A stretch of DNA of 64,000 nucleotides, from the IMG/VR virus record IMGVR_UViG_3300025133_009608, positions 124,001-188,000 of that record; one strand, given 5' to 3'. Position numbers and translations under genes: made by a program. Below the pieces are notes generated by a model that worked only from the letters and a program-made list of their open reading frames with translations, did no database searches and had not been told where the DNA came from. Shown here in pieces: positions 12,469 to 37,670 of the stretch (the first letter of the stretch is position 1; each line of letters opens with the position of its first letter).

Positions 12469-12663
12469 TTAAAAGATAAGGTTTGCTTTCTCTATCAGCC
12501 TTCTTGCATCTTCCGCTGATACAAATCCAAGAAGATCCTCCATTACGTCCTCGTCGCTTGTCATTTTTTCAGATACAGAGTCAATTATATCTGCCTCTTC
12601 GTGCATCTCAAGCTCGTCCAATCGGGTAGCCAAAGAGATGAGTTTTGATATATTTTTATTCAC
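12469..12663 (-). CDS. small protein with the recurrent two-helix module
   Basis: ISKLISLATRLDELEMHEEADIID. Confidence 0.75.
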   Translation of the reverse strand: MNKNISKLISLATRLDELEMHEEADIIDSVSEKMTSDEDVMEDLLGFVSAEDARRLIEKANLIF

Positions 12664-12859
12664 CCTCCTCTCCTTCGATGACCTTTATTGGCTCCTCGGA
12701 GTCATCGACTGCCTTTTCCATATCATTTAAAAAAGCTGACAGCTCGCTATCAGAAAACTGATCCATATACATAAAGCCTTCATCGCTTTTCCATATTAAA
12801 TACTGATATCTTACATGCTCTCCTTTTTTTCTCTTAGTCATCATCTCCTCCGTTGTCAA
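12656..12859 (-). CDS. hypothetical protein
   Basis: coupled ORF. Confidence 0.65.
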   Translation of the reverse strand: MTTEEMMTKRKKGEHVRYQYLIWKSDEGFMYMDQFSDSELSAFLNDMEKAVDDSEEPIKVIEGEEGE

Positions 12860-13037
12860 TGAATGGCAAAGCGCTATCTTCCCCTAAAGGCACCAGCCCG
12901 ATGGAGGTGGCTACCTCTTTGATTTCCGTATAAGCCTCAAGGATAAGCTCTCGATAGTGTGTTGATACCCACCCATCATTACGGGGAGAGGTGGCCTCCA
13001 TTCTCCAGTTTTTAATCTTTTTTCTTATGTCTTTCAT
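12834..13037 (-). CDS. hypothetical protein
   Basis: GGAGG RBS. Confidence 0.7.
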   Translation of the reverse strand: MKDIRKKIKNWRMEATSPRNDGWVSTHYRELILEAYTEIKEVATSIGLVPLGEDSALPFIDNGGDDD

Positions 13038-13066
13038 GAGAAACCCTCCTTCTTAATAAGAAGTTA

Positions 13067-13918
13067 TTAGTAACTCCTGAAGTCTCTAATATCGAATTCT
13101 CGCCCTAGAGTTTTTCGAATACTGCCAAGCGCCCTGATCTCCATCTTTCTCGCCCACTCTCTAGAGATCTTTAAATCAGCTGCTAACTCCCGCAGTGTTT
13201 TTTTCTTATCCGAAAGGAATCGCTCTTTTACAATGTATCTCTCATCGTCGGGGAGTCGACTCAGAGCCGCCCCTATTGCTAGGGATAAGGCGACTTTTGA
13301 ACTCTCCTTCTCTACCTTGTCCTCCATTGTACCCTCATCAACCAGTAAGTCCTGCATTGTTGCGCCATTAGACTCATCTCCGATCGGAGTGCTAAGAGAT
13401 GTGTCATGTCCAGATAAGGCCTTTTGCATTTCCACAAGATCGGGGATCGAAACCCCCAGCAGATCGGCGATTCTAGTGGTTTTTTTATCCCCACACAATC
13501 CTTCTTTTTCCGCCTTTAGGCGTGCCTGGGTGATTCTAAAGAAAATGGCCCTAGAACTCCTGGTCGTTGCAAGGCGCACTATGCACTTTCGATCCATCAT
13601 GTGCCGCTTCATATAGGCGTTTGCCCACATCATTCCGTAGGACAAAAAGCTTGCGCCCTTATCTGGATCATAAGACTCCGCCGCCCGAAGCAAGCCAGCC
13701 ACCCCCTCTTGCATTAAATCTTCAAACGATGAGGCTACATTTTTTGAAGATAGCTTCCAAGCCTCCCTTGAAACTAATCTCATGTTTGAGAAAATTACAG
13801 CATCAAGAGCCTTTTTGTCTCCATCCGACTGCCAGATAGCTATAAGCTCCTTTTGCTTGTCATGAGGCATTGGGGGGTTTTCTGACAAAACCCTAGAAAG
13901 ATAAGATGAGTGTAGCAT
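13067..13918 (-). CDS. RNA polymerase sigma-70 family factor (RpoH/RpoD-like, regions 2-4)
   Basis: SNMRLV, DLMQEG..GLL.A...YDPDKGASFLSY, SLSTPIG, HTH TLRELA..LKISREWARKME; exact start uncertain. Confidence 0.92.
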   Translation of the reverse strand: MLHSSYLSRVLSENPPMPHDKQKELIAIWQSDGDKKALDAVIFSNMRLVSREAWKLSSKNVASSFEDLMQEGVAGLLRAAESYDPDKGASFLSYGMMWANAYMKRHMMDRKCIVRLATTRSSRAIFFRITQARLKAEKEGLCGDKKTTRIADLLGVSIPDLVEMQKALSGHDTSLSTPIGDESNGATMQDLLVDEGTMEDKVEKESSKVALSLAIGAALSRLPDDERYIVKERFLSDKKKTLRELAADLKISREWARKMEIRALGSIRKTLGREFDIRDFRSY

Positions 13919-13925
13919 GTTTTCT

Positions 13926-14147
13926 CTATTTAAATATGGAATTGTGGCGGGAGATGGAGACTGTAACTGTGTTATCAACCGATGCAATCACTTTTGTCCC
14001 AAAGGAATTAGCGGGGTAATTTTTCTCATAATCATCAATCCAAGATTTGATCTGATATCCAAAGCCTGTTATAGATGTAGTTGTTTTCTTTTTTGTCTTT
14101 TCAGTCCAATTTATCTTAAACATATCCATGATTGTCACGCGGGCCAA
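13926..14147 (-). CDS. hypothetical protein
   Basis: coupled ORF. Confidence 0.6.
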   Translation of the reverse strand: MARVTIMDMFKINWTEKTKKKTTTSITGFGYQIKSWIDDYEKNYPANSFGTKVIASVDNTVTVSISRHNSIFK

Positions 14148-14470
14148 GTATGGTAATGATTATCATCATCAATTATTGTTAATTCGTTAACCCTTGAAAC
14201 TCTCCACCCCAAGGAGCTCCAAGACTTTGCCCGAGGATAGTAAGCAGAAATAATATTTATTATCTTTTTCTCTCTAGAGTCAGAGTACGCGGCCTTACCG
14301 CTATTCTTATCTGCTGGCCAACAAGCTTCTCTCGCAAGAAGGTTAGAGGGAAATACTCCAGACCCAGACAGGGTGAATGAATATCCGATATGACTTATTG
14401 TGTCAGGACGAATGTGATCGCCCACCTCATCTGATTCATAGTATGGAATTAAAGCGTCATTCGTTCCCAT
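14135..14470 (-). CDS. hypothetical protein
   Basis: coupled ORF. Confidence 0.65.
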   Translation of the reverse strand: MGTNDALIPYYESDEVGDHIRPDTISHIGYSFTLSGSGVFPSNLLAREACWPADKNSGKAAYSDSREKKIINIISAYYPRAKSWSSLGWRVSRVNELTIIDDDNHYHTWPA

Positions 14471-16500: not shown

Positions 16501-16586
16501 TGGCGGAAGGCTAGGGACTCGAACCCTAAACTGCTTTCACAGCGACGGATTTCAAATCCGCGTCCTAGCCAATTCGGATGCCTTCC
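16501..16586 (-). tRNA. trnS: tRNA-Ser(UGA)
   Basis: GCGGA-TTTGAAA-TCCGT anticodon arm, long variable arm, G73, CCA. Confidence 0.93.
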
Positions 16587-16593
16587 TTTGTGG

Positions 16594-17132: not shown

Positions 17133-17209
17133 TGGCGGTTCAGGTAGGACTCGAACCTACGACCCTTCGATTAACAGTCGAATACTCTAACCATCTGAGT
17201 TACTGAACC
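17133..17209 (-). tRNA. trnN: tRNA-Asn(GUU)
   Basis: TTCGA-CTGTTAA-TCGAA anticodon arm, G73, CCA. Confidence 0.93.
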
Positions 17210-18501: not shown

Positions 18502-18578
18502 TGGTAGGCCCACTCGGACTCGAACCGAGAACATCTTCCTTATGAGAGAAGCACTCTGACCAATTGAGTTATGGGCCT
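18502..18578 (-). tRNA. trnI: tRNA-CAU, most likely Ile2 (lysidine-modified) rather than Met
   Basis: anticodon CT-CAT-AA; acceptor AGGCCCA/UGGGCCU with A73 and C4-G69, C5-G68; no initiator features. Confidence 0.8.
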
Positions 18579-20036: not shown

Positions 20037-20426
20037 CTATGCCTCCTTCCACCAGACATAGCTTTTTCTGGTCTTTAGATAATCTGGGTTGTTTTCATGT
20101 TTGTACGCTTCAATTTCAAATGGAATTTGAAAATAAGCATCCATAGGATTCATTCCGCGAAAAAGATTTCTTACCCAAAAGAATGCGTACAGTACGGGGA
20201 ATCCAACGAACAGGAGTTCTATCCACTGCTGGTAATGAATTGTTTCATGGACTTTCATCTCTGGAGGTGCAGTCTCTCTGCAGAACACTAAGAATAGAAT
20301 ACTTATTGCGCTAATTTCTATTGGAGATATTTTAGATAGCAGCCTCGGAACGAAGCTATTTTCAATAAATATAGGCTTAAAGTCTTTTATCCTTCTTAGC
20401 GGCTCTTCTTCATTCTTGACTGTCAT
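20037..20426 (-). CDS. HExxH-motif membrane-associated protein (putative metallopeptidase)
   Basis: VHETIHYQQ ... FEIEAY. Confidence 0.6.
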   Translation of the reverse strand: MTVKNEEEPLRRIKDFKPIFIENSFVPRLLSKISPIEISAISILFLVFCRETAPPEMKVHETIHYQQWIELLFVGFPVLYAFFWVRNLFRGMNPMDAYFQIPFEIEAYKHENNPDYLKTRKSYVWWKEA

Positions 20427-20934
20427 AATCTTTTAGCTCTCTATTATGAAGCGCGGGCAGAACCTCAATTCGTTGAAATTCAATCATATTCATGTATTCC
20501 TCAAATTTAGTCGCCATCCACTTTAAAGGGTCCTCTATATCCTCTCCCTTTCGATCAATAGCCTCCGCTATTATTCCATCAACAATGGCGTAGCCAAGCT
20601 CACGGCTTATGCCGTTGTCTCCGGTAGCCATGTCTGCCCGCTCGAAAACTCCATCAAAGTACTCTACGATCTCAAGATCTGGTGACTGCCAAAGATCAGT
20701 GAGATCTTCATAGTTGCCCCACTCAGACATGAGGACGAAATTCTCAATAGCAAAATTCTTCCAGAATGCTTTTGACTCCTCTTCATTGGCATCCTCCGGG
20801 AGTCTATCACTGACGTCTTCCGAATACCCCTCTGAGCTTGCTACGTCCTCGATAACCCGGTCGAGAGTACTCGACTCTTCTACCAGACCTCTTTCGTCTA
20901 ATTCATTCGCTATCTTAATTAATTCTTTTAACAT
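20410..20934 (-). CDS. acidic protein with N-terminal two-helix module
   Basis: MLKELIKIANELDERGLVEESSTLD. Confidence 0.8.
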   Translation of the reverse strand: MLKELIKIANELDERGLVEESSTLDRVIEDVASSEGYSEDVSDRLPEDANEEESKAFWKNFAIENFVLMSEWGNYEDLTDLWQSPDLEIVEYFDGVFERADMATGDNGISRELGYAIVDGIIAEAIDRKGEDIEDPLKWMATKFEEYMNMIEFQRIEVLPALHNRELKDYDSQE

Positions 20935-20940
20935 TTAAAA

Positions 20941-22134
20941 CTATGCCTCACCAAAATAAAGGTTATTACCATACCCTGTATGACCTGCCGGGAGAGAGTC
21001 CTCAAAAACAAACCCCATTCCTTCCAGTTTGTCTATAACCTTATCCCTCATTCCAGCGCCAAAGTCACCATTGGCATATATGTGCAAAAGAGCGGTGCCA
21101 TCAGTAATCGAGGTAGCCTTAACGTCGATCTCGCTGCCATAATGTTTAATCATTGATTTAACTTGATACTCAATACTGCGGGCTTCCGCAGCCATGTCAT
21201 TTGATTTTGATTGAAAAATACTTGCATTTCGACGGCTCTCAAAGTATCCTGCGGCGCTTACCCCGCCCTCCGTTGGAGGCTCTGATGACTCGGCTTCTAA
21301 AATCAACTCATTCAAAGCGTTGTACAAATACTCAATAACCTCGCTTTTGTTCGAGGCATTTTTATAATTAGATTCACGGTAAGAAAAAATCTCTAAGAAG
21401 CTATTTATTGACTGAGCAACACTGTCCCTCCTTCTCTCAGGAGACTCGTCACCGCCGTAGCGCCAAGGGCCATTCTTTGCGTTCTCGAGTTCGGCCACTA
21501 CAGAATTTTCTGTATTATTAAAATCTATCTCTACCCTTCCTTGCTCGTCTAGTGCGGCCTCTCCCTCTGCATCATGAACAAGCCAGTCTCCCCAATCACC
21601 GTACCGTATAGCGGCTTTTTTTAATAATTCCATATCTGAAGCAATATTATCCAAATCATCAGCCTCTTTAACGAGGCCTCTTTCGTCTAATTCATTTGCT
21701 ATCTTAATTAATTCTTTAATCATATTATATCCTTTCCTGTCAAATAAGCTTAGTTGCCTTTCTCCGTAATCCATATTACTCCGAAACGGAGAGGGGGCAA
21801 TAGATGGCCCTTCGCTTGTAATCAACTGAGTCACGGACCGCTCAGGTGGGGATGATAGCCCCTTCCACTCATTAAAATATCTCAAATACTCTCTTGGGTA
21901 ATCTCTTAATCGCCTATTTACATTTTGCATCTGTATCGCGGGAGTTAGCCTTGGGTCAATTTGACCCAAAGAAACAAGCTTTCTCTTTAGCCATACCCGA
22001 AAGACCTGAGGGAATTTTATCTTAGCAGATCCGGATGCAGTCAGAAGAAGAACAGTGGAGGCCTCAGGGAACAGTCCCTTGCCCTCCAAGTTCGTCGCCA
22101 ACGCCCGCAGGGATTTCAAAATATTATCGCGCAT
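20941..22134 (-). CDS. protein with degenerate N-terminal module and a canonical internal module (internal start at 21723)
   Basis: MRDNILKSLRALATNLEGKGL...; internal MIKELIKIANELDERGLVKEADDLD preceded by AGGAAAGGA RBS. Confidence 0.75.
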   Translation of the reverse strand: MRDNILKSLRALATNLEGKGLFPEASTVLLLTASGSAKIKFPQVFRVWLKRKLVSLGQIDPRLTPAIQMQNVNRRLRDYPREYLRYFNEWKGLSSPPERSVTQLITSEGPSIAPSPFRSNMDYGERQLSLFDRKGYNMIKELIKIANELDERGLVKEADDLDNIASDMELLKKAAIRYGDWGDWLVHDAEGEAALDEQGRVEIDFNNTENSVVAELENAKNGPWRYGGDESPERRRDSVAQSINSFLEIFSYRESNYKNASNKSEVIEYLYNALNELILEAESSEPPTEGGVSAAGYFESRRNASIFQSKSNDMAAEARSIEYQVKSMIKHYGSEIDVKATSITDGTALLHIYANGDFGAGMRDKVIDKLEGMGFVFEDSLPAGHTGYGNNLYFGEA

Positions 22135-27342: not shown

Positions 27343-27585
27343 TTAGCGCCTCTGAAGATCGGTTACGGTCATTACTCCCCAGTTATAATCGCTTCGAACG
27401 GAACCCTCCAGCCCCAACTCTTCCAGGGCGGCAAAAACCTCTCTCTGCATATCAATCGATTTACCTGTTATTACCTCGAACGGCAAAGCCCAATCGTTCT
27501 TCAAGAGAAACGACTCTATAGCCTTATAGACATCGCAGTGACGAACCCCGTGAAGATCTACGGAAGATGGCCTACCATTCCCCAT
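27343..27585 (-). CDS. stand-alone Smr-like domain protein
   Basis: VDLHGV ... VITGKS. Confidence 0.7.
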   Translation of the reverse strand: MGNGRPSSVDLHGVRHCDVYKAIESFLLKNDWALPFEVITGKSIDMQREVFAALEELGLEGSVRSDYNWGVMTVTDLQRR

Positions 27586-27993: not shown

Positions 27994-28623
27994 CTAGGAG
28001 ATTTCATCCATTATTTGCTCAACGACAGTATCGATATCCATATCTTTATCCCCTGTCTCTACGTCATCAGTCAGAGCGGCAGTAATCAGGTCAGAAAAAT
28101 AACTTGTTGCATCATACTCCTCAAACTGCTGAGGATCAGTGGCTCCGTTATCAAATACAAAGTTGAGCCGGTCACCATCCAAATAGATTACCTCTTCTTT
28201 CCCGTCCCACAAGTCCCATGGAGTCTCGGTTCTAGCGTGCCAAAACAAGCTCTCAATTAGCTCCGAAGCCTCAGGGCCAGCGCCAAGCTCTATTACTGCA
28301 TTCTTTTTTCTTTCTTCCAATGTAATTGACTCTTCATCATCTGGGCTATGCGGTTCTTCTTCGGTTCCCGCCATGATCTTTGCCGTTGCGATAGCATCCT
28401 CCTTATCTCCTGTGTGATAATGGTCATCGGTTCCAATTGAATCCGGAGGAATAACGCGGTACTCTTTCCATTCGGCGTTATAATAAACTTCCGCGCCTCC
28501 CACTGACAATACAAGGTCTTGAGAGTCGGACGCAAGCCTGACAACTCGGTCCAAAGCATCAGCCTCTTTTACAAGACCTCTTCCGTCCAATGTGTTTGCA
28601 ATTTTAATTAGTTCTTTTATCAT
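27994..28623 (-). CDS. acidic protein with N-terminal two-helix module
   Basis: MIKELIKIANTLDGRGLVKEADALD. Confidence 0.85.
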   Translation of the reverse strand: MIKELIKIANTLDGRGLVKEADALDRVVRLASDSQDLVLSVGGAEVYYNAEWKEYRVIPPDSIGTDDHYHTGDKEDAIATAKIMAGTEEEPHSPDDEESITLEERKKNAVIELGAGPEASELIESLFWHARTETPWDLWDGKEEVIYLDGDRLNFVFDNGATDPQQFEEYDATSYFSDLITAALTDDVETGDKDMDIDTVVEQIMDEIS

Positions 28624-28635: not shown

Positions 28636-29391
28636 TTAAATAACTATAACGCCATCATCTTTGTCGGCGGCTGCTATGAATATCTCTCGAATCGAGTGAA
28701 GCCTGTCGCTCAGATATTCGTCGGAAAGTCCAGAATCAATCATTCTCGCTCCCCTTTGCACGCTTATATCAAACGTGCCGTCATCCCTCTCTTTCATCAC
28801 TCGCGATTCGCGCCTTGTGTCTGATGGAGGAACAACGTGTTTTGCAATTTCGTCCGGGAGGTTTAATAGCCTGTTTATTTTTCGAATAACATTTGAGACA
28901 TCTTCTGCCGGTATCTCTAAAACATGTTCGTCAATGTAAAATCCAAGAATATTAAATAACTTTCTGGCGTTCCGATTTGACAAATTAACATAATCCTCTG
29001 CCAACTCGCTTCCGATGTGCATTCCCATGCCGTCGATAACTTGATCGTGCTTTAGGTCGCAGAGGTCAATAGGGTTCTTTCCATAGAATTTATTCTTTAG
29101 CTCCGCAAATCTTTCGGCGTTTTCTTCTATCCATGGGTCGTCGCTCTTGCCGTCGGAGACAAACTCTATATCATCCTTGGCTCTCTCGCACTTCCAGCAC
29201 TCATTGAGAACATCTTTCCACTCGGCATTCGCCCTTCGAACATCCATACTGGATGTCTTTAGTAATGAGGCGACCTTTTTAAACTCAGAGTAGTTGCCTT
29301 TAAGCAGCCACCGGCGCAACGCGGATAATGCCGCCTCGTCTTTCTCTTTCATGTTAGCTGCCTCTTCGGGCAAGGTTCTCGATAATTTCAT
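28636..29391 (-). CDS. hypothetical protein
   Basis: long coupled ORF. Confidence 0.8.
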   Translation of the reverse strand: MKLSRTLPEEAANMKEKDEAALSALRRWLLKGNYSEFKKVASLLKTSSMDVRRANAEWKDVLNECWKCERAKDDIEFVSDGKSDDPWIEENAERFAELKNKFYGKNPIDLCDLKHDQVIDGMGMHIGSELAEDYVNLSNRNARKLFNILGFYIDEHVLEIPAEDVSNVIRKINRLLNLPDEIAKHVVPPSDTRRESRVMKERDDGTFDISVQRGARMIDSGLSDEYLSDRLHSIREIFIAAADKDDGVIVI

Positions 29392-29908
29392 CGAGAATGT
29401 CAGCCTCTTTCGTTAAAGACTTTTGATCCAGCTCTGTGGCGATTTTTGATAGCCCCGTCAAAACAACAGAGGCTTGCGCGATAGGGTTATAAGCAGGAGT
29501 TAACCGAGCCAGGTCATCTCTCTCATCAGAGAGTCCCCATGCTGGGTGAGTGACATCATCTTTTGGCGCGAAATCTTGGTCACTTCGAGATACTGTTTCG
29601 GCTCCAACGCCAAGGTATATATCAAACATAGTAGATAGTTGATCCTCCATGCCTTGAAGCTTTTCCTTCCCGATAGATATCATATGATCCAATATCTCAA
29701 AGGGATCCTCTTCGTGCTCGCGGGCTTCAGCCTCGGCTTCTTCGAGCGAACTTTTCAAGGATTTAACTCCGCTCTGAAGCCCGGTAACAAGCTCCTGAAA
29801 GTCGGCCATATCAATAATCTTAGAGAACTCCATATCCCCTTCGATTACGGTGTCCTCGTCTGTTATCGCTTCTCTGTTGTCTTCGATTTCTATTTTTTCA
29901 TTTGACAT
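29354..29908 (-). CDS. acidic protein with C-terminal two-helix module
   Basis: C-terminal GLSKIATELDQKSLTKEADILDEII. Confidence 0.8.
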   Translation of the reverse strand: MSNEKIEIEDNREAITDEDTVIEGDMEFSKIIDMADFQELVTGLQSGVKSLKSSLEEAEAEAREHEEDPFEILDHMISIGKEKLQGMEDQLSTMFDIYLGVGAETVSRSDQDFAPKDDVTHPAWGLSDERDDLARLTPAYNPIAQASVVLTGLSKIATELDQKSLTKEADILDEIIENLARRGS

Positions 29909-30784
29909 CTTTCGTCTTTCCTAAAAATACTTTTGGTTTCTGCCCGTACTTTGTACATTGACTATCAATTTATTAGTAGCTTTGTTTTTCGGGAATTTTT
30001 TATTTTTATTTATTTTTAATATTCAGAAATCTCGGCTTGATTTGTTCTGTTGTCTTTGGTTGGTTTTCTTTCGTTATAAAAACCCACGGACCCCGAAGTT
30101 CTATAAAATATAATCCCATACCATATAGCGGGCCAGACTTTATATTTATACGAAAGAGCCGGAGGCTCTTTTATTATAAACTTATCTTATTTGGCCCACC
30201 ATGTAACCTCTGGGGGCTTGGGCTCTTTGGAATCCGTGGGCTCCTAGTTTATTATCTTTTTAAACCCCTCATCATACAGTCCGGCTTTTTCCGGTGAGCT
30301 CTGACGACAAAATTTTAAGCGAGCAGAAAAATTTATATAAAAAACTTTAAAAAAAAATTATAGGAAATTTTTAGGGGGTGCCGTTCTTATATAAAAAACA
30401 TAAAAAATTGAGCAAATTGGGCAACCACCCTACGTGCTTTATCTGCTTTTTCCCAGAAAACCCCAAAAAAAACTGCCGCGAAATAAGCTTCTCTGCGCCC
30501 CAGAAAAAAGACCTCCTCGCTCTCAGAAAAAAGACCTTCTCTCTCTCAGGAATAAAAAGACTCCCCTGTGGGAATAAAGGCCTCTCTACCCCCTATGGAT
30601 TTATTATCTTTATTCTTCTTTATGTTCTCTACCCTATAAGGATAAAAAGAATCCAAAGGACTATGGATAGCTTTTCTTTTATTGTATTCTCCTATAGAGG
30701 TATTGGGCTGGGGGTTATCCTTTTTATTATCCTATTCAACAACTGGGATAATTTATTTATTTATTGTGGGGTCGCTGGATTATA
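29909..30784. other. ~875-bp non-coding, homopolymer-rich block with ~23-bp tandem repeats (origin candidate)
   Basis: no minus-strand ORF; CAGAAAAAAGACCT at 30501 and 30524, degenerate copies at ~30547 and ~30570. Confidence 0.5.
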
Positions 30785-31123
30785 TTATCGTTCAAAATTT
30801 CTCAGATCAATTAGATCTTGCTGCCTCTCCCCCTCCCAATACTCGCGCTCCTCGTAGCCTGACAGGTTCTCGACGTAATCGTAATATGCCTCTTCATAAA
30901 TATCTTTGATTCTTGCCATCGATTGAGCTATCCTGATCATATCGTCGGGGTCCCTAGCCTCTTTCATTTCTTTTGTTAATTCCTTTAGACGAGCTGCTGG
31001 GTCCATGCGCTCGTCTTCTTCTTTCTCTGTCGCCTTCTTTATAATAGAATCTAGATAGTCTGCTTCTTTCGAAAGACCCTTGCTATCTAAGTGAGTTGCT
31101 AATTTTATTAATTCTTTAATCAT
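30785..31123 (-). CDS. protein with N-terminal two-helix module
   Basis: MIKELIKLATHLDSKGLSKEADYLD. Confidence 0.85.
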   Translation of the reverse strand: MIKELIKLATHLDSKGLSKEADYLDSIIKKATEKEEDERMDPAARLKELTKEMKEARDPDDMIRIAQSMARIKDIYEEAYYDYVENLSGYEEREYWEGERQQDLIDLRNFER

Positions 31124-31143
31124 TGTTTAATCCTTGTTTAATC

Positions 31144-31623
31144 CTAACAGCTTTTAATATGTCCCGACACGATATTCTCCCTGGATATCCGCCCATCATT
31201 GTCCAGCTCCCAAGTTAGCTCAACACTAAGCATCCCGGTATCTCCCGTGTCCATATGCATTGCATCTCGTAGGAATTCATAATTCTTACATTTCCATGAT
31301 AGTATAATTTGGTTTCCTTCTTCGCTCTTCTCTGCACATGAGTGATTATTAACATCGCCGTTGCACACCGGATTCACATCTATGGCGGCACCAGAATCAT
31401 CATAAATAAATTCAAAATCTATTTCGCCATTTGTCTCCGAAGATAGATCATCTTTAGATACCGGCTTACACCCAGAGGCTCCTGTTGCGGCAACAGCAAA
31501 ACATAGTGCGATCATAATCGGGGCTATTGCCTCCTTCTTTATAATAGAATCTAGATAGTCCGCCTCTTTCACAAGGCCTCTGCTGTCCAATTCGTTTGCT
31601 AATTTTATTAATTCTTTAATCAT
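31144..31623 (-). CDS. protein with N-terminal module followed by a hydrophobic segment and a lipobox-like ASGC
   Basis: MIKELIKLANELDSRGLVKEADYLD ... IMIALCFAVAATGASGC; start re-assigned. Confidence 0.8.
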   Translation of the reverse strand: MIKELIKLANELDSRGLVKEADYLDSIIKKEAIAPIMIALCFAVAATGASGCKPVSKDDLSSETNGEIDFEFIYDDSGAAIDVNPVCNGDVNNHSCAEKSEEGNQIILSWKCKNYEFLRDAMHMDTGDTGMLSVELTWELDNDGRISRENIVSGHIKSC

Positions 31624-31662
31624 TGTTCCATTTTCCTTAAGAATACATTTCAACGTTGAATA

Positions 31663-32247
31663 TTAATAGTTAAAACTTGCTCTATCAAACTTCCCTGAGA
31701 ATAGAACTTCTTTGTTTTCTTCTATCTTGTCGTCGGGCCATTCCCACCATTTTAATTTAAGTAGAAACTCAATGTCTTCATCGCTAAATCTTTTCCTTAT
31801 TTGCTTGGCCGGGTTCCCTCCGACGATAGCATATGGCTCCACATCTTTTACGACGTTTGCATTGGCAGCAATGACCGCTCCATCCCCGATGGTTACTCCC
31901 GACATTACAGTTGCTCCAAACCCAATCCACACATCGTTTCCGATTGTAATGTCACCATTTGATATGATTCCCGGCTCTTCTATATCATAGTGAAGGTATG
32001 TTGATGTACGTTCGGCGATATGATTTCCGCCCAAGAAAAATATGCAGTTGGTTGCTATCGAGCAATAGTCTCCAATTATTAATCGTGCATCTTCTTTTGC
32101 ATTCGGTGTCGTTTCCCATAAGAAGACTTTAGAGCTTGGGACAAAAGAGGATGTTGAGATCGTGGTTCTGGGTCCCAGAATTACTTTCGCCTCTCCTCCG
32201 AGAGTTTTGTTTATCTCTCTGTAGTTAGCTAAATCATAAATTATCAT
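31663..32247 (-). CDS. hexapeptide-repeat O-acetyltransferase (Vat/CatB xenobiotic acyltransferase-like)
   Basis: IGDYCSIA, IGNDVWIG, IGDGAVIAA, PYAIVGGNPAK.IRKRF, KWWEWP. Confidence 0.9.
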   Translation of the reverse strand: MIIYDLANYREINKTLGGEAKVILGPRTTISTSSFVPSSKVFLWETTPNAKEDARLIIGDYCSIATNCIFFLGGNHIAERTSTYLHYDIEEPGIISNGDITIGNDVWIGFGATVMSGVTIGDGAVIAANANVVKDVEPYAIVGGNPAKQIRKRFSDEDIEFLLKLKWWEWPDDKIEENKEVLFSGKFDRASFNY

Positions 32248-32258
32248 TTTCTAATTAT

Positions 32259-32624
32259 TTAAATTACTTGCATCTCTGGAGTATTCATTTCAGCCGAGTG
32301 ACCATCCAGCGGCGAATCCAATGAGAGCTCAACTATATCAAATGAGGCGCCGTGCGGCTGGCCTTCCGAGGCGGTATCTTCCGCCCAAGTTTCTTTGTAT
32401 TCTTCTTTTACTGATTCATTGTTCCAAGATTTATAATTACTAATAGCCTCTTCCGCTTTGGCTCTAGAGCTATATGCCCCCTCCACTCCCGTGGTGCTAA
32501 AGCTATCCTCTCCCAAGCTTCTATGTGCTGCGACAACAACATAAATTAAATTATTACTTTGTGCTTCTTTTATAAGATTACTATAATTTCTATCTGATGC
32601 TATCTTTATTAATTCCTTAATCAT
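32259..32624 (-). CDS. protein with truncated module (MIKELIKIASDRNY)
   Basis: first helix of module fused to KIASDRNY. Confidence 0.8.
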   Translation of the reverse strand: MIKELIKIASDRNYSNLIKEAQSNNLIYVVVAAHRSLGEDSFSTTGVEGAYSSRAKAEEAISNYKSWNNESVKEEYKETWAEDTASEGQPHGASFDIVELSLDSPLDGHSAEMNTPEMQVI

Positions 32625-32683
32625 TATTCTTTATCCTTCTTAATTATTACGAGGCTGCTTCATCTTCCTGATGGGGCCACTTG

Positions 32684-33166
32684 TTATCGCTCATAATTCT
32701 GCATAAAAAATTCGTCTTGATGGTCGCCCTCTCCCATCTCAGCAACATACTCTTCAGCGGTCTGCTTCTCGCGATTATCAAGATCGTGGGGGGCGTTACG
32801 GCCCTCTTCATCTCGGAATCTCTCCATCATATTCACCATATTAGTCAAAAACTCTTTGCCCGCGCCTTCAACAGAGTAGCTGCGATCGACTAGACTTTTA
32901 AGAGTTCTTTGATGCTCTCCTGAGTTTCTCAGAACATAGGTCAAATCCTCTTGTGATAGGCCCGGAACCAGATCTCCCAAGATATTAGCCAGAGCACCTT
33001 CAAATTGCTCAATATAATTATCGCCAGTATTTCTTGTCAGAGTGTGAATGGTTTCGTTATCAACACCCAGAGAAGCCCGCTTAATAACCGTATCCAAATA
33101 GTCTGCTTCTTTTGCCAAGCCTCTTTCATCCAGATGAGTAGCTAATTTTATTAATTCTTTAATCAT
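32684..33166 (-). CDS. protein with N-terminal two-helix module
   Basis: MIKELIKLATHLDERGLAKEADYLD; GGAG RBS. Confidence 0.85.
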   Translation of the reverse strand: MIKELIKLATHLDERGLAKEADYLDTVIKRASLGVDNETIHTLTRNTGDNYIEQFEGALANILGDLVPGLSQEDLTYVLRNSGEHQRTLKSLVDRSYSVEGAGKEFLTNMVNMMERFRDEEGRNAPHDLDNREKQTAEEYVAEMGEGDHQDEFFMQNYER

Positions 33167-33788
33167 TTGCACTCTCCATCTCTTCTAATTCTTCATCTCG
33201 CATGTTCTTATAAAGATTAAACTGATCCAGAGCGGTGGCGGTTAACGCCTTTGCTACATTCTTTTCGATAAAATACCTATAGTAATCATTTCCCCTAGCC
33301 ATGCGCGAATGGATTTCATGTGCCATCTCATTGACAAAACTTTTTAATCCTTCTTCTGCGAATTGAGCCTGACTGTGAGCTCGATCATCAGAGTTCCAGC
33401 GCCTTTCTTCATTCTCTTCCCGGGACCCATGCTCCTCAAATAGGAAGCTTATAACGCCACTCATAGAGTGCGCGCCCACTTGCGCGGGTGCGGTGTTATA
33501 CACCACGTCCCCATCCGGCCCTGACTTATCGTCAAATAGAACTATATTAAACCCGACGCTATCATCATATCGAAGCTCCGCTGCCGGAGTTATCTCATAT
33601 TTAAATAAATCCGCTCCATCGAGTTCACTTCCATTATAAATAATCTTTTCATCGGTTGATTCCACCAGGGTCAGGGAGCCTATTCTCTCTGGCCATGTGG
33701 TGTCTTTCGACTCTGCAATTTTATTTAAATTATAATTATTGATACTCGCTATCCTCTTGAGATTGCTTCTTTGTGATATCTTTTTCAT
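33159..33788 (-). CDS. acidic hypothetical protein
   Basis: start re-assigned to MKKISQ (GGGAGAG RBS); KRIAS/NKIAES N-terminus. Confidence 0.8.
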   Translation of the reverse strand: MKKISQRSNLKRIASINNYNLNKIAESKDTTWPERIGSLTLVESTDEKIIYNGSELDGADLFKYEITPAAELRYDDSVGFNIVLFDDKSGPDGDVVYNTAPAQVGAHSMSGVISFLFEEHGSREENEERRWNSDDRAHSQAQFAEEGLKSFVNEMAHEIHSRMARGNDYYRYFIEKNVAKALTATALDQFNLYKNMRDEELEEMESAND

Positions 33789-33841
33789 TTTACAACTCTC
33801 CCTATAAATACATTTCAATGTTGATTATTAATAGTTTATTT

Positions 33842-34147
33842 TTAAAATAAAAAATCCAAATGGAACAGTAATTTTCCGGCGATTTCTTTCGGGCAATTAT
33901 CTAATATATAATCTGATGATACTTGCTTATAGAATATTTCTTTATGATTGTCGGTGACCGGGGATATGGTGCCGGTCAAAGACCTTCCGGATGGAACTAC
34001 CGATACAATAGTCTTAACTCTCCACTGTGGGCCGAGGGCGTTTATATTTAAAACAAACTCTGTACCCTTAAGTATAAACTCTCCTCTTTCAAGCGAAATG
34101 GGAGAGAATAATCCGGTCTTAAAAACTTTTGAAGATAATGGGGACAT
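33842..34147 (-). CDS. hypothetical protein with C-terminal LLFHLD motif
   Basis: shares C-terminus with 48047..48337. Confidence 0.7.
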   Translation of the reverse strand: MSPLSSKVFKTGLFSPISLERGEFILKGTEFVLNINALGPQWRVKTIVSVVPSGRSLTGTISPVTDNHKEIFYKQVSSDYILDNCPKEIAGKLLFHLDFLF

Positions 34148-34156
34148 TATTAAATA

Positions 34157-34351
34157 CTAAAGATTTATTCCCAAAATCTTCTTAACCTTGTCAAGAAGGC
34201 CTATTATCTTTTCGCTGGCTTTGATATTTAATTCTATAAGCTTGCGAACGCAGTAGCCAAGGCCCGATAAAAAAAGCAGCACCACCATAAGGACCATTGC
34301 AATTAAAAAAGATATAATATTTAATACCTTTCCCATGACTATCTGGAACAT
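34157..34351 (-). CDS. small membrane protein
   Basis: hydrophobic helix. Confidence 0.55.
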   Translation of the reverse strand: MFQIVMGKVLNIISFLIAMVLMVVLLFLSGLGYCVRKLIELNIKASEKIIGLLDKVKKILGINL

Positions 34352-35238
34352 TAAACGATCGCCGTTGTTGAAGTTCCGGAATCCAAAAACGCAAGACCTT
34401 CTTGGCTTACCGATTCAATCTTCATGTGCACGTGCGGGCGAGCATCACCCGTTTCATCTCCAACTCTTCCGGAAATTAATCCGCGACTTACAGCCTCTCT
34501 TGCGACCGCAAGGGCTCCGGGGGTATTTCTAAGATCAAATGCAATACCGCGGGCGTGATTTGACATAGGGTGAGAAGTCAGCCTTCTCTCTGCGCAGCTT
34601 AGTGATTCGGCATCTGTTGCCATCTCAAAGCAGTCTGCTACAGCGTTTGCGTTATCAGGCTGAGAACTATACAATCTTACTAGATAATCTCTGCCTCTTT
34701 GCGCATCTCCGTTGCCGTTACTTTTATAATTGTTATACATCGCACGCGCCTGCCTGCCTGGGCCTCTAAATCCGGACGTCATAACCAGCGGTGGATGCCC
34801 CATCTCTTCTGCTAACAGCGCTAGAATATCTGCCGCCTTCTTTGCATCTGAGTCTAGGCCGCTATAATCAACTCCATCTTTTATTTCTATAATTGATTCT
34901 CCGGAATAATTTCTTGGACTGACCCTCTGGCGTCTCACCCAAGGAGATGTCGCCTCTGGAGGAACATATCTTCCGCGAACAGAGCTCGCTCCTCCGGCCC
35001 AAGGAGATGTCGCCTCTGGGGGAACATATCTTTGAGTATTGCCCGGCCGAGAGGCGGGAGTAGAGCTTGCATACTGAGAGGATGCTGGACCTTGGCGGTC
35101 CGTCCCATAGAATAGCTCATCTGAGTGCTGCTGTAATATATCTTGAAACCCAACGGCAAGTTTTGTTATCTCGTCAGACTCACTTTGGAGTCCTAGGTCT
35201 TTTAGTTTTTTTGCCAATAATTTTATTTTATCATTCAT
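34351..35238 (-). CDS. peptidase M15-fold Zn peptidoglycan peptidase with degenerate N-terminal module
   Basis: TSGFR..RQ, SNHARGIAFDL (SxHxxGxAxD), HVH; KIKLLAKKLKDLGLQSESDEI; RYVPPEATSPW x2. Confidence 0.8.
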   Translation of the reverse strand: MNDKIKLLAKKLKDLGLQSESDEITKLAVGFQDILQQHSDELFYGTDRQGPASSQYASSTPASRPGNTQRYVPPEATSPWAGGASSVRGRYVPPEATSPWVRRQRVSPRNYSGESIIEIKDGVDYSGLDSDAKKAADILALLAEEMGHPPLVMTSGFRGPGRQARAMYNNYKSNGNGDAQRGRDYLVRLYSSQPDNANAVADCFEMATDAESLSCAERRLTSHPMSNHARGIAFDLRNTPGALAVAREAVSRGLISGRVGDETGDARPHVHMKIESVSQEGLAFLDSGTSTTAIV

Positions 35239-35379
35239 TTTATACCCATGCGCGCGTACATACATTAAGATTTAATATTAGTAATCATAACTTTTTAGTT
35301 ATACTTAAATTATATAAAAATAGCTATACATGTCGATAGATGGATATATTTATATAATTTATCTCACCCCTTGTTCTGG

Positions 35380-35730
35380 CTATTTCTCAAGCATATCATC
35401 TTCATAATCAAGCCATATGGAGCCATAATTAAAAAAATCACTCCATGCCGTATAGTCGCCCTCATAAGCCAAGAGCCCAGACGATGAAGTCAGATCATAA
35501 AAATTACTTCCAGAATCATGTGTTAGCGGAAATAATATAGACCCACCTGGCGCGCTGTGAGCGCCAGGCTGGCTGGGATGAGTTGGGTTATTATTCTGAA
35601 GAAACTCATCTATATCGCTCTTCTCAACATCGGCAAGGATTAATTTATCTGTCGCAATACTAAAAAGTGAGTATTTATTATCATCAGTTTTTACAAAGTA
35701 AAATTTTGTCTCCGCAAATAAGTCGAGCAT
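35380..35730 (-). CDS. hypothetical protein
   Basis: AGGA RBS. Confidence 0.7.
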   Translation of the reverse strand: MLDLFAETKFYFVKTDDNKYSLFSIATDKLILADVEKSDIDEFLQNNNPTHPSQPGAHSAPGGSILFPLTHDSGSNFYDLTSSSGLLAYEGDYTAWSDFFNYGSIWLDYEDDMLEK

Positions 35731-36414
35731 TTTGTTTTCCTTTTGTTTAATAAAATAGATTATAAGCCCTTCTCAAAATGGGACGAAAAAAGCTCACATC
35801 CTACTTCAATTATTAGTTGAAAAAAGACATGAGCTTGGCTATCTTGGCAGTAGAACTGGAATATAAAATATATTTTATTCCGTGGCGCTTTGCGGTTCTA
35901 TTTGGCATTATTAATAATCAAAGCAAGTTCCTAGATTTTAAGCAAAAGAATAACCAGATAAAACGTTTATCTTATCTTGTTAAACACTATATATAATTAT
36001 ATAGAACTATCCTTACTGCTACATAAGAAATCGAGATTATTTATATTAAAAATATCTGATCTAATATTTTAATGAGTTGTCAACTTTTTGCCCAAAAATT
36101 TTTTGACATATCTTGAATATCAACTTCACATCTTTTTTGAACTTAAAGCATATAGAGATATAATATTAGACCAGATAGTATCAAAGTATATGGTCTTTAT
36201 TTGATATACCGTTGCATCTAATAGTTTAATTATTATAGATGATATGGTGTAAAAATATCTTTACGGGAAGTCAATTTTTTGCCCAAACACCCATTGCCGT
36301 GTCAATGGCGCAATAACCTCCGGGCCGAAAAGTTCGATAAATAAGATCGATTTATTATAGTAAAGTGTAAGGGGAAAGGCCTCTTGCGCCCTACTCACAA
36401 CCAAGGAAAATAAA

Positions 36415-36849
36415 ATGAGTATTTCACTATTCAATGATCAGAAGGATGTCTCCTCTGTTCAGACCATTCGCGAGACGATGAACGTCTCGCTCAGCGACGA
36501 TGGGACCCCCATCGTTTCGTTTGCCACAAATCGCGGCAAGGGATCTGGGGCTCAGTCTATGGCTGTCGCTGATTACGCCGAGTATGTCGCGGCTCTTAGT
36601 CACTTTGCTTCTAACGGAATTGAAGAGATTCCAACTGAAGACCTCTCTCCTGCGGAGACTGTCCGTCAGACTATCGCCCTTGATGACTCTGGAGTGATCT
36701 CATTCCGAGTGAAGAGCGGGAAGGGCTCAAAGCCAGCTAAGGTTGGCGCCGGAGAGTTCTCTGAAGTTACCGATCTTCTTCGCTCTACCCTTGAGGCGGT
36801 TGAAGCGGCTGCTGCCCGCCTCACTGGAAGTGACACTGAAGAAGAGTAG
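36415..36849 (+). CDS. MSISLFNDQK paralogue 1; internal tandem repeat, putative PC4/PUR-like ssDNA-binding protein
   Basis: two repeats IVSFATNRGKGSG / ISFRVKSGKGSK; own promoter (36333) and terminator. Confidence 0.8.
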   Translation: MSISLFNDQKDVSSVQTIRETMNVSLSDDGTPIVSFATNRGKGSGAQSMAVADYAEYVAALSHFASNGIEEIPTEDLSPAETVRQTIALDDSGVISFRVKSGKGSKPAKVGAGEFSEVTDLLRSTLEAVEAAAARLTGSDTEEE

Positions 36850-36870
36850 TAACTACTCTCAATAAAGCTA

Positions 36871-36908
36871 AGGCTCCACTGGTTTAATCCCCGGTGGAGC
36901 CTTTCTTT
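36871..36908 (+). terminator. intrinsic terminator
   Basis: AGGCTCCAC/GTGGAGCCT stem plus TTTCTTT. Confidence 0.8.
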
Positions 36909-37006
36909 GCTTAAGATGTCAAACTTTTGCCCAAGTGATCGATCTTTTCATAATAAATCCTCCTTGTTGCGATAGGTGCGATTGGCATGTCTTTTATTTA
37001 TTTTAC

Positions 37007-37213
37007 CTATATCTTCTTAAGCCCTTCGACCTCGCCTTCAAGCTCGAAAATTGAGACGTATGGTGTATTGCGTTCAATGGCCTGATCCCTTGCAGCTTTA
37101 AGTATAGCAAGCGCACTATCAAGAGCTGCATTCCAAGCGGCAGATTCCTTCGCGGAGCAATCCTCACTGCTCTTCCTCAGTCTATAATTTCTATCTGCCG
37201 CAATCTTTCTCAT
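37007..37213 (-). CDS. small protein starting MRKIAADRNY
   Basis: GGAGG RBS; shares 26 nt with neighbour. Confidence 0.7.
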   Translation of the reverse strand: MRKIAADRNYRLRKSSEDCSAKESAAWNAALDSALAILKAARDQAIERNTPYVSIFELEGEVEGLKKI

Positions 37214-37292
37214 AACAAATCCTCCGAGATTTAACACTTCTATCTTACAGATGCCCTATTGAGCAATCCCAATGCCGGCCAAGATTGAGAAG

Positions 37293-37670
37293 TTACTCAA
37301 TAGACAGATCGTCATATTCAGTCTGTCCGCCAAGATGTTGCTCCCGCCGCCTCTTTTGATTTTCGGACAGCGCTCGAACAATCTCAATCGATATATTTCG
37401 AATTGTCTCAGAGATTGTTGGATCAACATTAAGATGACCGCTGTTCTGTAAATGGCCAATCCAATGGGCTACATTGTCAACATCTTCCTCAAATCCTGCC
37501 ATATCCAGTTCTAAGCTGTAGCCCTTAGAGTTCGACCCTAATTCGTCCATAGCGTATTTATAATTTCTATCTGCCGCAATCTTTTTAATCACAGAGTCCA
37601 AATAGTCCGCTTCTTTTGCCAAGCCTCGCTCATCTAGATGAGTCGCTAGCTTAATCAGTTCTTTAATCAT
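37293..37670 (-). CDS. protein with N-terminal two-helix module plus KIAADRNY
   Basis: MIKELIKLATHLDERGLAKEADYLDSVIKKIAADRNY. Confidence 0.85.
   Translation of the reverse strand: MIKELIKLATHLDERGLAKEADYLDSVIKKIAADRNYKYAMDELGSNSKGYSLELDMAGFEEDVDNVAHWIGHLQNSGHLNVDPTISETIRNISIEIVRALSENQKRRREQHLGGQTEYDDLSIE

Follow-up and report, generated by a model that had tools for sequence, protein, structure and literature searches.

A 32-residue predicted helical hairpin shared by otherwise unrelated proteins of a giant uncultivated marine phage

An array of unrelated phage proteins with a common module

The 64-kb window analysed here is part of a 316-kb contig from a clade of large uncultivated phages that encode GroEL. 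Between 12.4 and 37.7 kb of the window, ten open reading frames (ORFs), all on the minus strand, carry a 32-residue module with the consensus MIKELIKLAxxLDxxGLxKEADxLDxxIKK (Table 1). Seven have the module at Met1, one has it internally and one at the C terminus, and one copy is divergent. A profile hidden Markov model (HMM) built from the window copies, and a wider one, score the seven N-terminal copies at 46–75 bits (E = 1e-14 to 1e-23), and no hit lies elsewhere in the six-frame translation of the 64 kb. The remainder of each protein is unrelated to the others by BLASTP.

Table 1 Features of the array (positions in the 64-kb window; bit scores from the module HMM)
Position	Strand	Feature	Module	Evidence
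12469–12663	−	64-aa ORF, GTG start	Divergent, near N terminus (nt 12559–12654)	28.2 bits, E = 1.1e-7 in the six-frame scan
20410–20934	−	174-aa ORF, very acidic tail	Met1 (nt 20839–20934)	54.2 bits; pI 4.1
20941–22134	−	397-aa ORF	Strong internal copy (aa 138–168, nt 21628–21723); possible decayed copy at N terminus (nt 22045–22134)	Internal copy 55.6 bits; N-terminal copy E = 0.075–0.19, not significant
22899–25688	−	929-aa ORF	Not supported	No HMM hit; only a short resemblance around LIKYLDSKGL
27572–27982	−	136-aa ORF	More divergent, Met1 (nt 27887–27982)	46.3 bits
27994–28623	−	209-aa ORF; tail matches phrog_7884 (unknown function)	Met1 (nt 28528–28623)	57.5 bits; PHROGs hit 1.1e-8 on aa 42–85
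29354–29908	−	184-aa acidic ORF	C terminus (nt 29369–29464, 4 residues before the stop)	47.8 bits; TACTAATA box upstream at 29971–29978
30785–31123	−	112-aa ORF, acidic tail	Met1 (nt 31028–31123)	73.8 bits
31144–31623	−	159-aa ORF; module, then hydrophobic stretch and lipobox-like ASGC (lipoprotein-type signal sequence with the tag as an extended n-region)	Met1 (nt 31528–31623)	69.5 bits; hydrophobic segment aa 26–44; ortholog P0019 keeps the lipobox and has a 66% identical tail; TATTAATA box at 31661–31668
32259–32624	−	121-aa ORF	First 11 residues only (truncated or decayed)	13.7 bits, E = 3e-4, HMM positions 1–11 only
32684–33166	−	160-aa ORF	Met1 (nt 33071–33166)	72.7 bits
34157–35265	−	Probable lysis cassette: M15/VanY-like peptidase (34351–35265) and an overlapping 64-aa holin-like protein with two hydrophobic segments (34157–34351)	Non-significant tag-like N terminus of the peptidase	Weak hits to Peptidase_M15_3, M15_4 and VanY; homolog L041:14575–16029 has PG_binding_1 at 1.3e-17; tag E = 0.15–0.77; TACTAATA box at 35276–35283
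37293–37670	−	125-aa ORF; acidic, unrelated tail	Met1 (nt 37575–37670)	74.5 bits; exact protein seen on a 316,664-bp contig; TATTAATA box at 37729–37736, 59 nt upstream
29971–37736	−	TAYTAATA promoter-like boxes upstream of array genes (37729–37736, 35276–35283, 33826–33833, 31661–31668, 29971–29978)		Distances to start codons 11–63 nt

A preliminary description of the locus had reported a module of about 28 residues on about a dozen unrelated proteins, and this observation is confirmed. The positions at which it had the tagged genes begin are the low (stop) coordinates of the ORFs; the true starts of 31144 and 32684 are the ATGs at 31623 (not the TTG at 31653) and 33166. Of the degenerate copies it had proposed, 12469 is supported, 32259 retains only a fragment, those at the N terminus of 20941 and in 34351 are not significant, and 22899 is not supported. 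The lipobox it had placed in a tagged protein (31144) is visible and conserved in an ortholog. Its tagged M15 peptidase rests on weak Pfam hits plus a homolog with a PG_binding_1 domain, and is more likely the endolysin of a lysis cassette than a cargo protein.

Selection acts on the peptide rather than on the DNA, as had been proposed. The copies in 37293 and 32684 share 28 of 32 residues and differ at 12 codons synonymously (25 residues and 10 codons had been counted earlier). Between copies synonymous sites are saturated whereas dN is 0.08–0.36, dN/dS is 0.03–0.25, and upstream DNA is not conserved. The edge of the module is sharp, with information content falling from above 2 bits to below 0.6 at residue 33, and it is followed by positions rich in D, E, G and P. 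The saturated synonymous sites and unrelated flanks exclude a DNA repeat, and no Rfam family lies in the array, leaving a DNA- or RNA-level repeat such as a recombination site or regulatory RNA very unlikely.

Distribution and predicted fold

The module is not a named family: no match to it was found in Pfam, PHROGs, the PDB (no sequence hit at E ≤ 10) or GenBank phages. However, an exhaustive profile search of 1.84 billion representatives identified 3,939 protein clusters at E ≤ 1e-3. Among the best 141 proteins, 114 copies are N-terminal, 86 internal and 32 C-terminal, and 78 proteins have two or three copies. In the loci that we retrieved, 21 of 162 non-redundant module-bearing ORFs have more than one copy; some linkers are only 6–12 residues, and some proteins carry a copy at both ends. 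The module is essentially confined to viral contigs, with 70 loci in IMG/VR against one 2.9-kb contig among 185,579 species genomes.

AlphaFold predicts each module as a helix, a three-residue loop and a second helix. A natural 67-residue protein that consists of two modules is predicted, without an alignment, as four helices with pLDDT 84.7 and pTM 0.65, although the packing of these helices is inferred from pTM and not from inspected coordinates. Both helices are amphipathic (hydrophobic moment 0.55) and half of the residues are hydrophobic.

We considered whether this is a known helical motif in disguise. The best fold neighbours of the tandem model are TPR and designed helical repeats, which also have helix-turn-helix units of about 32–34 residues that stack on a neighbouring unit, but these matches are not significant (E ≥ 0.57; E ≥ 0.4 for Foldseek overall). 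The R/K-G-L turn faintly recalls SAP motifs, and two of the 141 module proteins have EF-hand hits elsewhere in the protein. Against this, there is no Pfam hit to TPR, EF-hand, SAP, HeH or Rho_N families at E ≤ 0.1, and the predicted loop has 3 residues, not the 12-residue EF loop or the extended HeH linker. The conserved polar residues are acidic. In addition, the consensus differs from that of TPRs, and most proteins carry a single copy (141 of 162), whereas TPR domains need three or more tandem repeats. We regard a disguised known motif as very unlikely.

The tag is 70–87% identical between related large-phage contigs, compared with 61–67% for the DNA ligase, 55% for the exonuclease and 35–44% for the sigma factor. 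Tags are also slightly more alike within a genome than between genomes (0.613 against 0.554; 0 of 2,000 permutations). These values bear on the possibility of a generic self-association domain without a common hub, in which each protein forms homodimers or tetramers through its own hairpins, like the N-terminal helix-loop-helix of small scaffolding or ROP-like proteins, and the tag spreads as a cheap way to oligomerize new small proteins. The predicted compact four-helix unit of the tandem modules, the proteins with copies at both ends and the diversity of partners in different compartments would fit this reading. However, simple oligomerization does not need near-invariant surface residues (D13, G16, E20 and D25) across thousands of proteins, nor conservation above that of essential enzymes, and independent homodimerizers would be expected to drift apart to avoid cross-pairing. 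We therefore consider it unlikely.

Promoter boxes and core proteins

The preliminary description had proposed that the cluster lacks a GATC-class promoter between 20.4 and 36.3 kb and has TAYTAATA boxes instead, and both claims hold. The 18-mer TAAGATCGATTYATTATA occurs 30 times (0.23 expected), of which 28 are at 36.3–63.8 kb, the other two (with 2–3 mismatches) are at 3.6 and 18.9 kb, and none lies inside 20.4–36.3 kb. TAYTAATA gives 17 matches against 7.4 expected, a number reached in 0 of 100 shuffles. Across the clade the same box heads the morphogenesis operons: it lies upstream of gene family cl10 in 20 of 21 distinct loci, is enriched before gene families cl10, cl4 and q17, and is shared by the cl10–cl6–cl8 and cl4...TerL–portal operons. 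In the genome of the window it lies upstream of cl10 and between the portal gene and the next head gene. That the box marks late expression is inferred only from the genes that it precedes.

Two conserved core proteins of the clade also carry the module or a divergent form of it. The first, cl8, is encoded next to the most conserved 519-aa protein and has one to three modules in about 31 loci; its ortholog in the genome of the window has lost a recognizable module, so cl8 cannot be an obligatory hub. The second, q11, lies between the portal and a protein with a head-maturation-protease domain and contains a divergent module (hhalign probability 87.6%, E = 3.5e-6), although the q11 hairpin of this genome has a loop insertion and does not score with the module HMM. 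A tagged gene sits 1–2 kb upstream of TerL in this genome and in many relatives, whereas the array itself lies about 85–110 kb from the head genes of the same genome.

A host-directed handle is also conceivable, in which the hairpin binds one conserved host protein (a chaperone, protease adaptor, RNA polymerase or membrane machinery) and delivers diverse effectors to it, or marks them for timed turnover. High conservation across divergent phages would fit a slowly evolving host target, the near-absence of the module from cellular genomes indicates that it does not mimic a host domain, and the clade always carries its own GroEL. However, the module also sits in cl8 and q11 in the morphogenesis region, occurs in tandem and at both ends of proteins, and belongs to a clade that spans marine and other sample sets with presumably different hosts. 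We regard this reading as unlikely.

A hypothesized docking hairpin

The preliminary description interpreted the module as a position-independent helical-hairpin zip code that loads effectors into the prohead for ejection, or onto one scaffold. This interpretation is partly supported: a peptide-level, position-independent, predicted hairpin that is not a named family and is essentially confined to viral contigs is borne out, whereas the prohead destination and ejection remain inferences. In the strict form of this model, tagged proteins would dock to the scaffold, core or inner capsid surface of the prohead, be packaged and be ejected into the next host with the DNA, as for T4 internal proteins, P1 Dar proteins and the ejection proteins of phiKZ and SPN3US. 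This is a special case of the docking reading that we favour below, with the destination fixed. Indirect support comes from the promoter box shared with the terminase, portal and head operons, the tagged genes near TerL, the divergent module of q11 within the portal-to-protease cluster, the head-maturation-protease domain encoded by the clade and one module protein that hits the Pfam T7 capsid assembly family at 1e-4. Small acidic proteins could, by inference, be DNA-mimic anti-defence factors.

Other features argue against a pure capsid signal. In 31144 the tag precedes a lipoprotein signal sequence, and would be left in the cytoplasm or cut off; it is also fused to a CCA-adding enzyme (L041) and a DUF1232 membrane protein. 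The tagged proteins are strongly acidic (median pI 4.7), which is unfavourable next to packed DNA, and the array is distant from the head genes. Virion loading is plausible but, without a virion proteome for this uncultivated clade, unproven, and we hold it only tentatively.

[quoted passage not shown] The T4 sequence is about 10 residues, strictly N-terminal and removed by the prohead protease. By contrast, the module is predicted to be a folded hairpin of 32 residues that is often not N-terminal, no conserved cleavage motif follows residue 32, and there is no sequence similarity. The helix-turn-helix coat-binding domain at the C terminus of the P22 scaffolding protein, used to load cargo into P22 capsids, and the helix-loop-helix dimer of the phi29 scaffolding protein are small two-helix docking elements of head-assembly proteins that are portable to foreign cargo and pair into four-helix bundles, and the module-like hairpin of q11 lies where scaffolding genes usually sit. 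However, the P22 hairpin is basic and binds coat protein electrostatically, whereas the module has conserved acidic residues; no sequence or significant fold match was found, and the module has spread to thousands of non-scaffold proteins. The PKA RII-alpha dimerization/docking domain, dockerin–cohesin, encapsulin cargo-loading peptides and microcompartment encapsulation peptides are also small, portable, end-located elements on flexible linkers that recruit diverse enzymes to one scaffold or shell, usually through amphipathic helices. Those systems are cellular and have identified receptors, whereas the module is phage-restricted, has no identified receptor, and occurs in tandem and internally.

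We favour, with moderate confidence, the reading that the module is a previously unnamed, virus-restricted, independently folding amphipathic α-helical hairpin (helix 1, about residues 2–14; turn, K/R-G-L; helix 2, about residues 18–31) that works as a protein–protein docking unit, placed at either end of a protein, in the middle or in tandem, and joined to the rest by a flexible acidic linker. Our analysis establishes the existence and boundaries of the module, selection on the peptide, the helix-turn-helix prediction, positional freedom, restriction to viral contigs and a promoter class shared with the packaging and head operons; hairpin–hairpin pairing, the recruiting role and the destination are inferred. 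Pairing is inferred from single-chain predictions and from the reasoning that a lone hairpin that is 50% hydrophobic cannot bury its own surface, and the fusion partners in different compartments fit a generic oligomerization domain as well as a common hub. In this view, hairpins would pair with each other or with the divergent hairpins of cl8 and q11 to form four-helix units.

We hypothesize that such pairing would gather a changing set of mostly small, acidic, probably late-expressed accessory proteins onto one shared assembly, for which our leading guess is the procapsid scaffold or core. The need for every tag to stay compatible with the same partner or partners would explain why these 32 residues are better conserved than the DNA ligase of the phage.

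Copies of the module, selection and family size

All genes between 11 and 39 kb lie on the minus strand, and the coordinates used in the preliminary description are the low ends of the ORFs, by which we name them here. The motif is visible directly in the translations, and the observation of a shared tag on otherwise unrelated proteins holds. We built a hidden Markov model (HMM) from seven copies and ran it on the six-frame translation of the whole 64 kb, and the result was confirmed with a wider HMM. Seven strong copies start at the first Met, and three further copies (one internal, one C-terminal and one divergent) are supported, whereas several of the degenerate copies that had been proposed are weak or absent (see table). 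Nothing else in the window scores. The tails share no BLASTP similarity with each other or with other window genes, and the tagged proteins are more acidic than the rest (D+E 0.206 against 0.140, p = 1e-4).

Coordinates of module-bearing ORFs and other features (L numbers denote fetched loci other than the window)
Feature	Position (strand)	Observation
ORF 20410	20410-20934 (-)	Strong copy at the first Met
ORF 27572	27572-27982 (-)	Strong copy at the first Met
ORF 27994	27994-28623 (-)	Strong copy at the first Met
ORF 30785	30785-31123 (-)	Strong copy at the first Met
ORF 31144	31144-31623 (-)	Strong copy at the first Met, followed by a hydrophobic stretch and a conserved lipobox
ORF 32684	32684-33166 (-)	Strong copy at the first Met
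ORF 37293	37293-37670 (-)	Strong copy at the first Met
ORF 20941	20941-22134 (-)	Supported internal copy (aa 138-168); N-terminal resemblance not significant
ORF 29354	29354-29908 (-)	Supported C-terminal copy
ORF 12469	12469-12663 (-)	Supported divergent copy
ORF 32259	32259 (-)	Only the first 11 residues kept
ORF 22899	22899 (-)	Module not detected
Probable lysis cassette	34157-35265 (-)	M15/VanY-like peptidase (ORF 34351; tag-like N-terminus not significant) overlapping by one base a 64-aa holin-like protein; preceded by a TACTAATA box
tmRNA	11596-11999 (-)	Rfam RF00023, 96.9 bits; ARAGORN tag peptide ANNNNHFYAAALAA
Seven tRNA genes	2117-2192, 2679-2761, 16501-16586, 17133-17209, 18502-18578, 60496-60572, 60609-60684 (all -)	Arg-tct, Leu-taa, Ser-tga, Asn-gtt x2, Met-cat, Lys-ttt; scattered among small ORFs
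Sigma-70-type factor	13067-13987 (-)	Regions 2 and 4; phrog_351, 1.6e-42
Sigma region-4-like protein	L185:6863-7297	Resembles region 4 only; in the core block, directly upstream of the cl10 operon
18-mer TAAGATCGATTYATTATA	36342-63811 (28 sites); 3560 and 18935	The two outlying sites are degenerate
TAYTAATA box with inverted repeat	31661-31690 and 33826-33855 (-)	TCAACnTTGA
TAYTAATA box with inverted repeat	29971-29995	TTGATAGTCAA
Three-copy gene family	36415-36849 (+), 47544-47954 (+), 51950-52438 (-)	135-160 aa
PP-loop ATPase, MobA-like nucleotidyltransferase and N6/N4 DNA methyltransferase	2855-3556, 5322-6059, 6056-6694 (-)	Close together; the PP-loop ATPase has a weak QueC-like hit
Family cl6	L009:7562-9118, L159:1525-3078	Constant length (512-530 aa)
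Family cl8, relative that keeps the module	L150:11568-12056	Example of a cl8 protein with the module
q11	L187:14901-15767	Between the portal and the protease-containing protein
Portal	L187:11792-13489	Head cluster
Tagged nucleotidyltransferase	L041:7724-10090	789 aa; PolyA_pol 2e-30; module at the extreme C-terminus

Between paralogous tags, 5-15 of the 32 codons differ synonymously, and the 70 nt upstream of each start codon are unrelated. NG86 estimates give dN of 0.08-0.36, whereas dS is above 1 in most pairs or too saturated to compute, and dN/dS is 0.03-0.25 where it can be computed. The copies are therefore old duplicates held by purifying selection on the protein, and the same saturation, together with the unrelated flanks, led us to reject a DNA-level repeat or recombination cassette. 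A structured RNA was also considered, but no Rfam family lies in the array. Across 90 distinct N-terminal tags, information content stays high to residue 30-32 and collapses at residue 33, after which a D/E/G/P/S-rich stretch follows, as expected for a flexible linker. L5, A9, L12, D13, G16, E20, A21 and D25 are nearly invariant.

A word-indexed search with residues 1-40 of the 37293 protein returned 53 metagenomic ‘hypothetical’ proteins, nearly all with the tag at Met1 and unrelated tails. IMG/VR holds at least 70 loci, in which our HMM found 156 non-redundant copies: 59 at Met1, 26 C-terminal, and the rest internal or a few residues in. An exhaustive profile search of 1.84 billion cluster representatives (clusters at 50% identity) found 3,939 proteins at E<=1e-3 and 748 at E<=1e-10. 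A search for larger annotated module proteins, using the internal copy of 20941, returned only four proteins. By contrast, among 185,579 species genomes a single contig matched, a 2.9-kb MAG fragment. In GenBank phages, megablast of the array and tblastn of a tagged protein and of the core proteins cl8 and cl6 (see below) gave no match, and the nearest cultured terminase is 25% identical. A full-text literature search for motif strings found only irrelevant papers.

Predicted fold and comparison with known families

In an AlphaFold model of a three-module protein, each module is predicted as helix, three-residue loop, helix, although the model overall is poor (pLDDT 59.8). A natural 67-residue protein that consists of two modules joined by seven residues was predicted without an alignment as four helices, with pLDDT 84.7 and pTM 0.65. 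We read this as the two hairpins packing on each other, an inference from the scores and not from inspected coordinates. Both helices are amphipathic and half of the residues are hydrophobic; a lone hairpin would therefore need a partner surface.

The module has no significant match in the curated families and solved structures searched. Pfam-A and PHROGs v4 scans of the tagged window proteins, of module proteins from related loci and of the best 141 proteins from the exhaustive search gave nothing for the module and only scattered partner domains. A profile search of the PDB gave no hit at E<=10. Foldseek searches with the tandem model gave best E values of 0.57 against PDB and 0.42 against BFVD, neither of them significant, and the nearest shapes are TPR and designed helical repeats. 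Membership of the TPR clan is nevertheless rejected: no Pfam TPR hit was found in the window proteins or in the 141 module proteins, and 141 of 162 module ORFs have a single copy, whereas TPR domains form arrays of three or more tandem repeats. An EF-hand is likewise rejected, because the predicted loop has 3 residues rather than 12, the position equivalent to loop residue 5 is K/R, and the module region has no Pfam EF-hand hit in the window proteins. The HeH, SAP and Rho_N bihelical nucleic-acid-binding motifs are rejected because there is no Pfam hit at E<=0.1, the predicted turn is tight rather than an extended linker, and the conserved polar residues are D13, E20, D22 and D25.

The module also differs from a capsid targeting sequence of the T4 type, a peptide of about 10 residues found only at the extreme N-terminus. 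It has 32 residues with sharp edges, and occurs internally, C-terminally and in tandem in the window and in 3,939 proteins. A T4-type sequence is removed by the prohead protease at a conserved site directly after the tag; here no conserved residue follows position 32 (information below 0.6 bits), and the clade has a head-maturation-protease domain of undetermined specificity. With regard to the coat-binding helix-turn-helix of P22-like scaffolding proteins, a two-helix hairpin is predicted, and a divergent module is present in q11, a protein encoded between the portal and a protease-containing protein. q11 is a scaffold candidate by position only, however, and most module proteins are encoded elsewhere.

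Genomic context, core proteins and promoter boxes

The window (bases 124,001-188,000 of the 316,664-bp contig IMGVR_UViG_3300025133_009608) encodes a 5'-3' exonuclease, a DNA methyltransferase, a sigma-70-type factor and an ATP-dependent ligase, as well as seven tRNAs and a tmRNA. The tmRNA lies just downstream of the sigma-factor region and next to the divergent tagged ORF 12469. The PP-loop ATPase, MobA-like nucleotidyltransferase and DNA methyltransferase may form a DNA-modification module. The three-copy gene family, with two copies on the opposite strand to nearly everything else, is also multi-copy in related contigs (47-59% identity) and has no PDB match; it may be a mobile or homing element.

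Elsewhere on the same contig (39.8-69.2 kb) lies a block conserved in roughly 30-35 of the first 70 fetched loci and in contigs of up to 422 kb (cl and q numbers denote its protein families). Its gene order is Pol III alpha, RuvC-like, GroEL, RecA-like, primase and a sigma region-4-like protein; cl10, cl6 (518 aa), cl8, a tagged 237-aa gene, cl2, cl5, cl1, a PolyA_pol-type nucleotidyltransferase, cl4 and cl0; a tagged 160-aa gene, cl9, the large terminase and the portal; and a 457-aa protein, q11, a 734-aa protein and a 1108-aa protein whose family has a head-maturation-protease domain. The genome therefore has at least 13 supported tags, and the large array lies 85-110 kb from the head genes.

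Two core proteins of this block carry the module or a divergent form of it. cl8 has a conserved 140-residue N-domain followed by one to three modules in most relatives, but its AlphaFold model was too weak (pLDDT 59.8) for a fold search. In the window's genome the module of cl8 has decayed and a tagged gene overlaps its stop codon, which weakens the idea of cl8 as an obligatory hub. A contig labelled as a giant-virus MAG (IMGVR_UViG_GVMAG-M-3300009182-17_000001) carries the cl8 signature peptide DYNEGFK, and is probably a fragment of this phage clade that was binned with a eukaryotic giant virus. q11 contains a divergent version of the module (hhalign probability 87.6%, E 3.5e-6 over 31 of 32 columns), and the window genome has a q11 ortholog (E 1.7e-65) with a loop insertion in that hairpin. 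cl6, the most conserved gene of the clade, always lies next to cl8 and is 35-87% identical across 125 or more clusters and contigs up to 422 kb. Pfam, PHROGs and PDB profile searches and a search of 5.8 billion proteins with the conserved neighbours cl6, cl1, cl0, cl2, q12 and q23 returned only ‘hypothetical’, and thus neither a capsid protein nor a bona fide scaffold was identified among them.

The promoter claims of the preliminary description also hold. Its ‘GATC-class’ element is the 18-mer TAAGATCGATTYATTATA, which has 30 sites against 0.23 expected, almost all on the gene strand in short intergenic gaps, at about one per kb. None lies inside 20.4-36.3 kb or in the tag array, and it is probably the promoter of a different, likely early, gene class. 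TAYTAATA is enriched (17 against 7.4 expected) and lies 11-63 nt upstream of several array genes; at three of these boxes a short inverted repeat follows, which may be an operator. The same box is conserved upstream of cl10 in 20 of 21 distinct loci, and a longer version, TTTCTATTAATAAAGATAAATTTTACAGC, is conserved at this position across the clade. In the terminase-centred loci the box precedes cl10 (15 of 16), cl4 (11 of 24) and the family q17 (6 of 11), against 50 of 660 genes overall. In the window's own genome it lies upstream of cl10 and between the portal and the next head gene. The tag array therefore shares its promoter type with the operons that contain the terminase, portal and head genes, from which we infer late expression. 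Either the sigma-70-type factor or the small region-4-like protein upstream of the cl10 operon could be the factor that reads the box.

Other features do not fit a simple capsid signal. In 31144 the tag precedes a lipobox, a 789-aa CCA-adding or poly(A)-polymerase-type enzyme from locus L041 carries the module at its C-terminus, and one module protein has a DUF1232 membrane domain. A shorter, untagged PolyA_pol-type gene (cl3) is part of the conserved block upstream of the terminase. The M15/VanY-like peptidase 34351 is immediately followed by a small protein with two hydrophobic segments and a charged C-terminus, and is probably the endolysin. An untagged hexapeptide acyltransferase also sits in the array.

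Inferred docking role and possible destination

The safest statement is that this is a new, phage-restricted, position-independent docking hairpin, with hairpin and docking known from prediction and inference, respectively. Its conservation exceeds that of the ligase and exonuclease between related genomes, and tags are slightly more alike within a genome than between genomes; both facts fit many proteins having to remain compatible with the same partner. The tandem prediction and the hairpins in cl8 and q11 make hairpin-hairpin pairing the most economical mechanism, and we consider docking by pairing somewhat more likely than not. The shared promoter class, the tagged genes next to the terminase gene and the q11 hairpin point towards head assembly as the destination, although several fusion partners argue for a broader role. 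The interpretation offered in the preliminary description, a zip code that loads effectors into the prohead for ejection or onto one scaffold, is supported only in part. The module itself, its conservation as a peptide and its distribution are established by the sequence analysis, whereas pairing and late expression are inferred, and packaging into proheads or virions is a hypothesis that no result here shows.

Loading of the tagged proteins into virions is a special case of the docking model that we regard as plausible but less likely than not. In an equally tentative extension, a large, globally distributed clade of uncultivated phages encoding GroEL (about 110-420 kb) would use one universal hairpin ‘Velcro’. 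A scaffold-like head protein (q11) and a core protein (cl8) would present the hairpin, and dozens of interchangeable late accessory proteins carrying the same hairpin would thereby be loaded into the procapsid and delivered into the next host as a pre-made arsenal of anti-defence and takeover factors. This would be a programmable, position-independent cargo-loading code, distinct from the T4 capsid targeting sequence.

The module defines an unannotated domain family, and marks a fast-turnover set of accessory proteins in a widespread but uncultivated clade of large phages. That a 32-residue tag is better conserved than the phage's replication enzymes fits a central, shared binding partner, the identity of which would show how these phages organize or deliver their accessory proteins. 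If the partner is the procapsid, the tag becomes a ready-made handle for predicting injected proteins from sequence alone and for loading cargo into capsids; if it is a self-pairing unit, it is a natural minimal heterodimerization module. In either case, the HMM gives annotators a way to flag thousands of ‘hypothetical proteins’ as members of one functional class.
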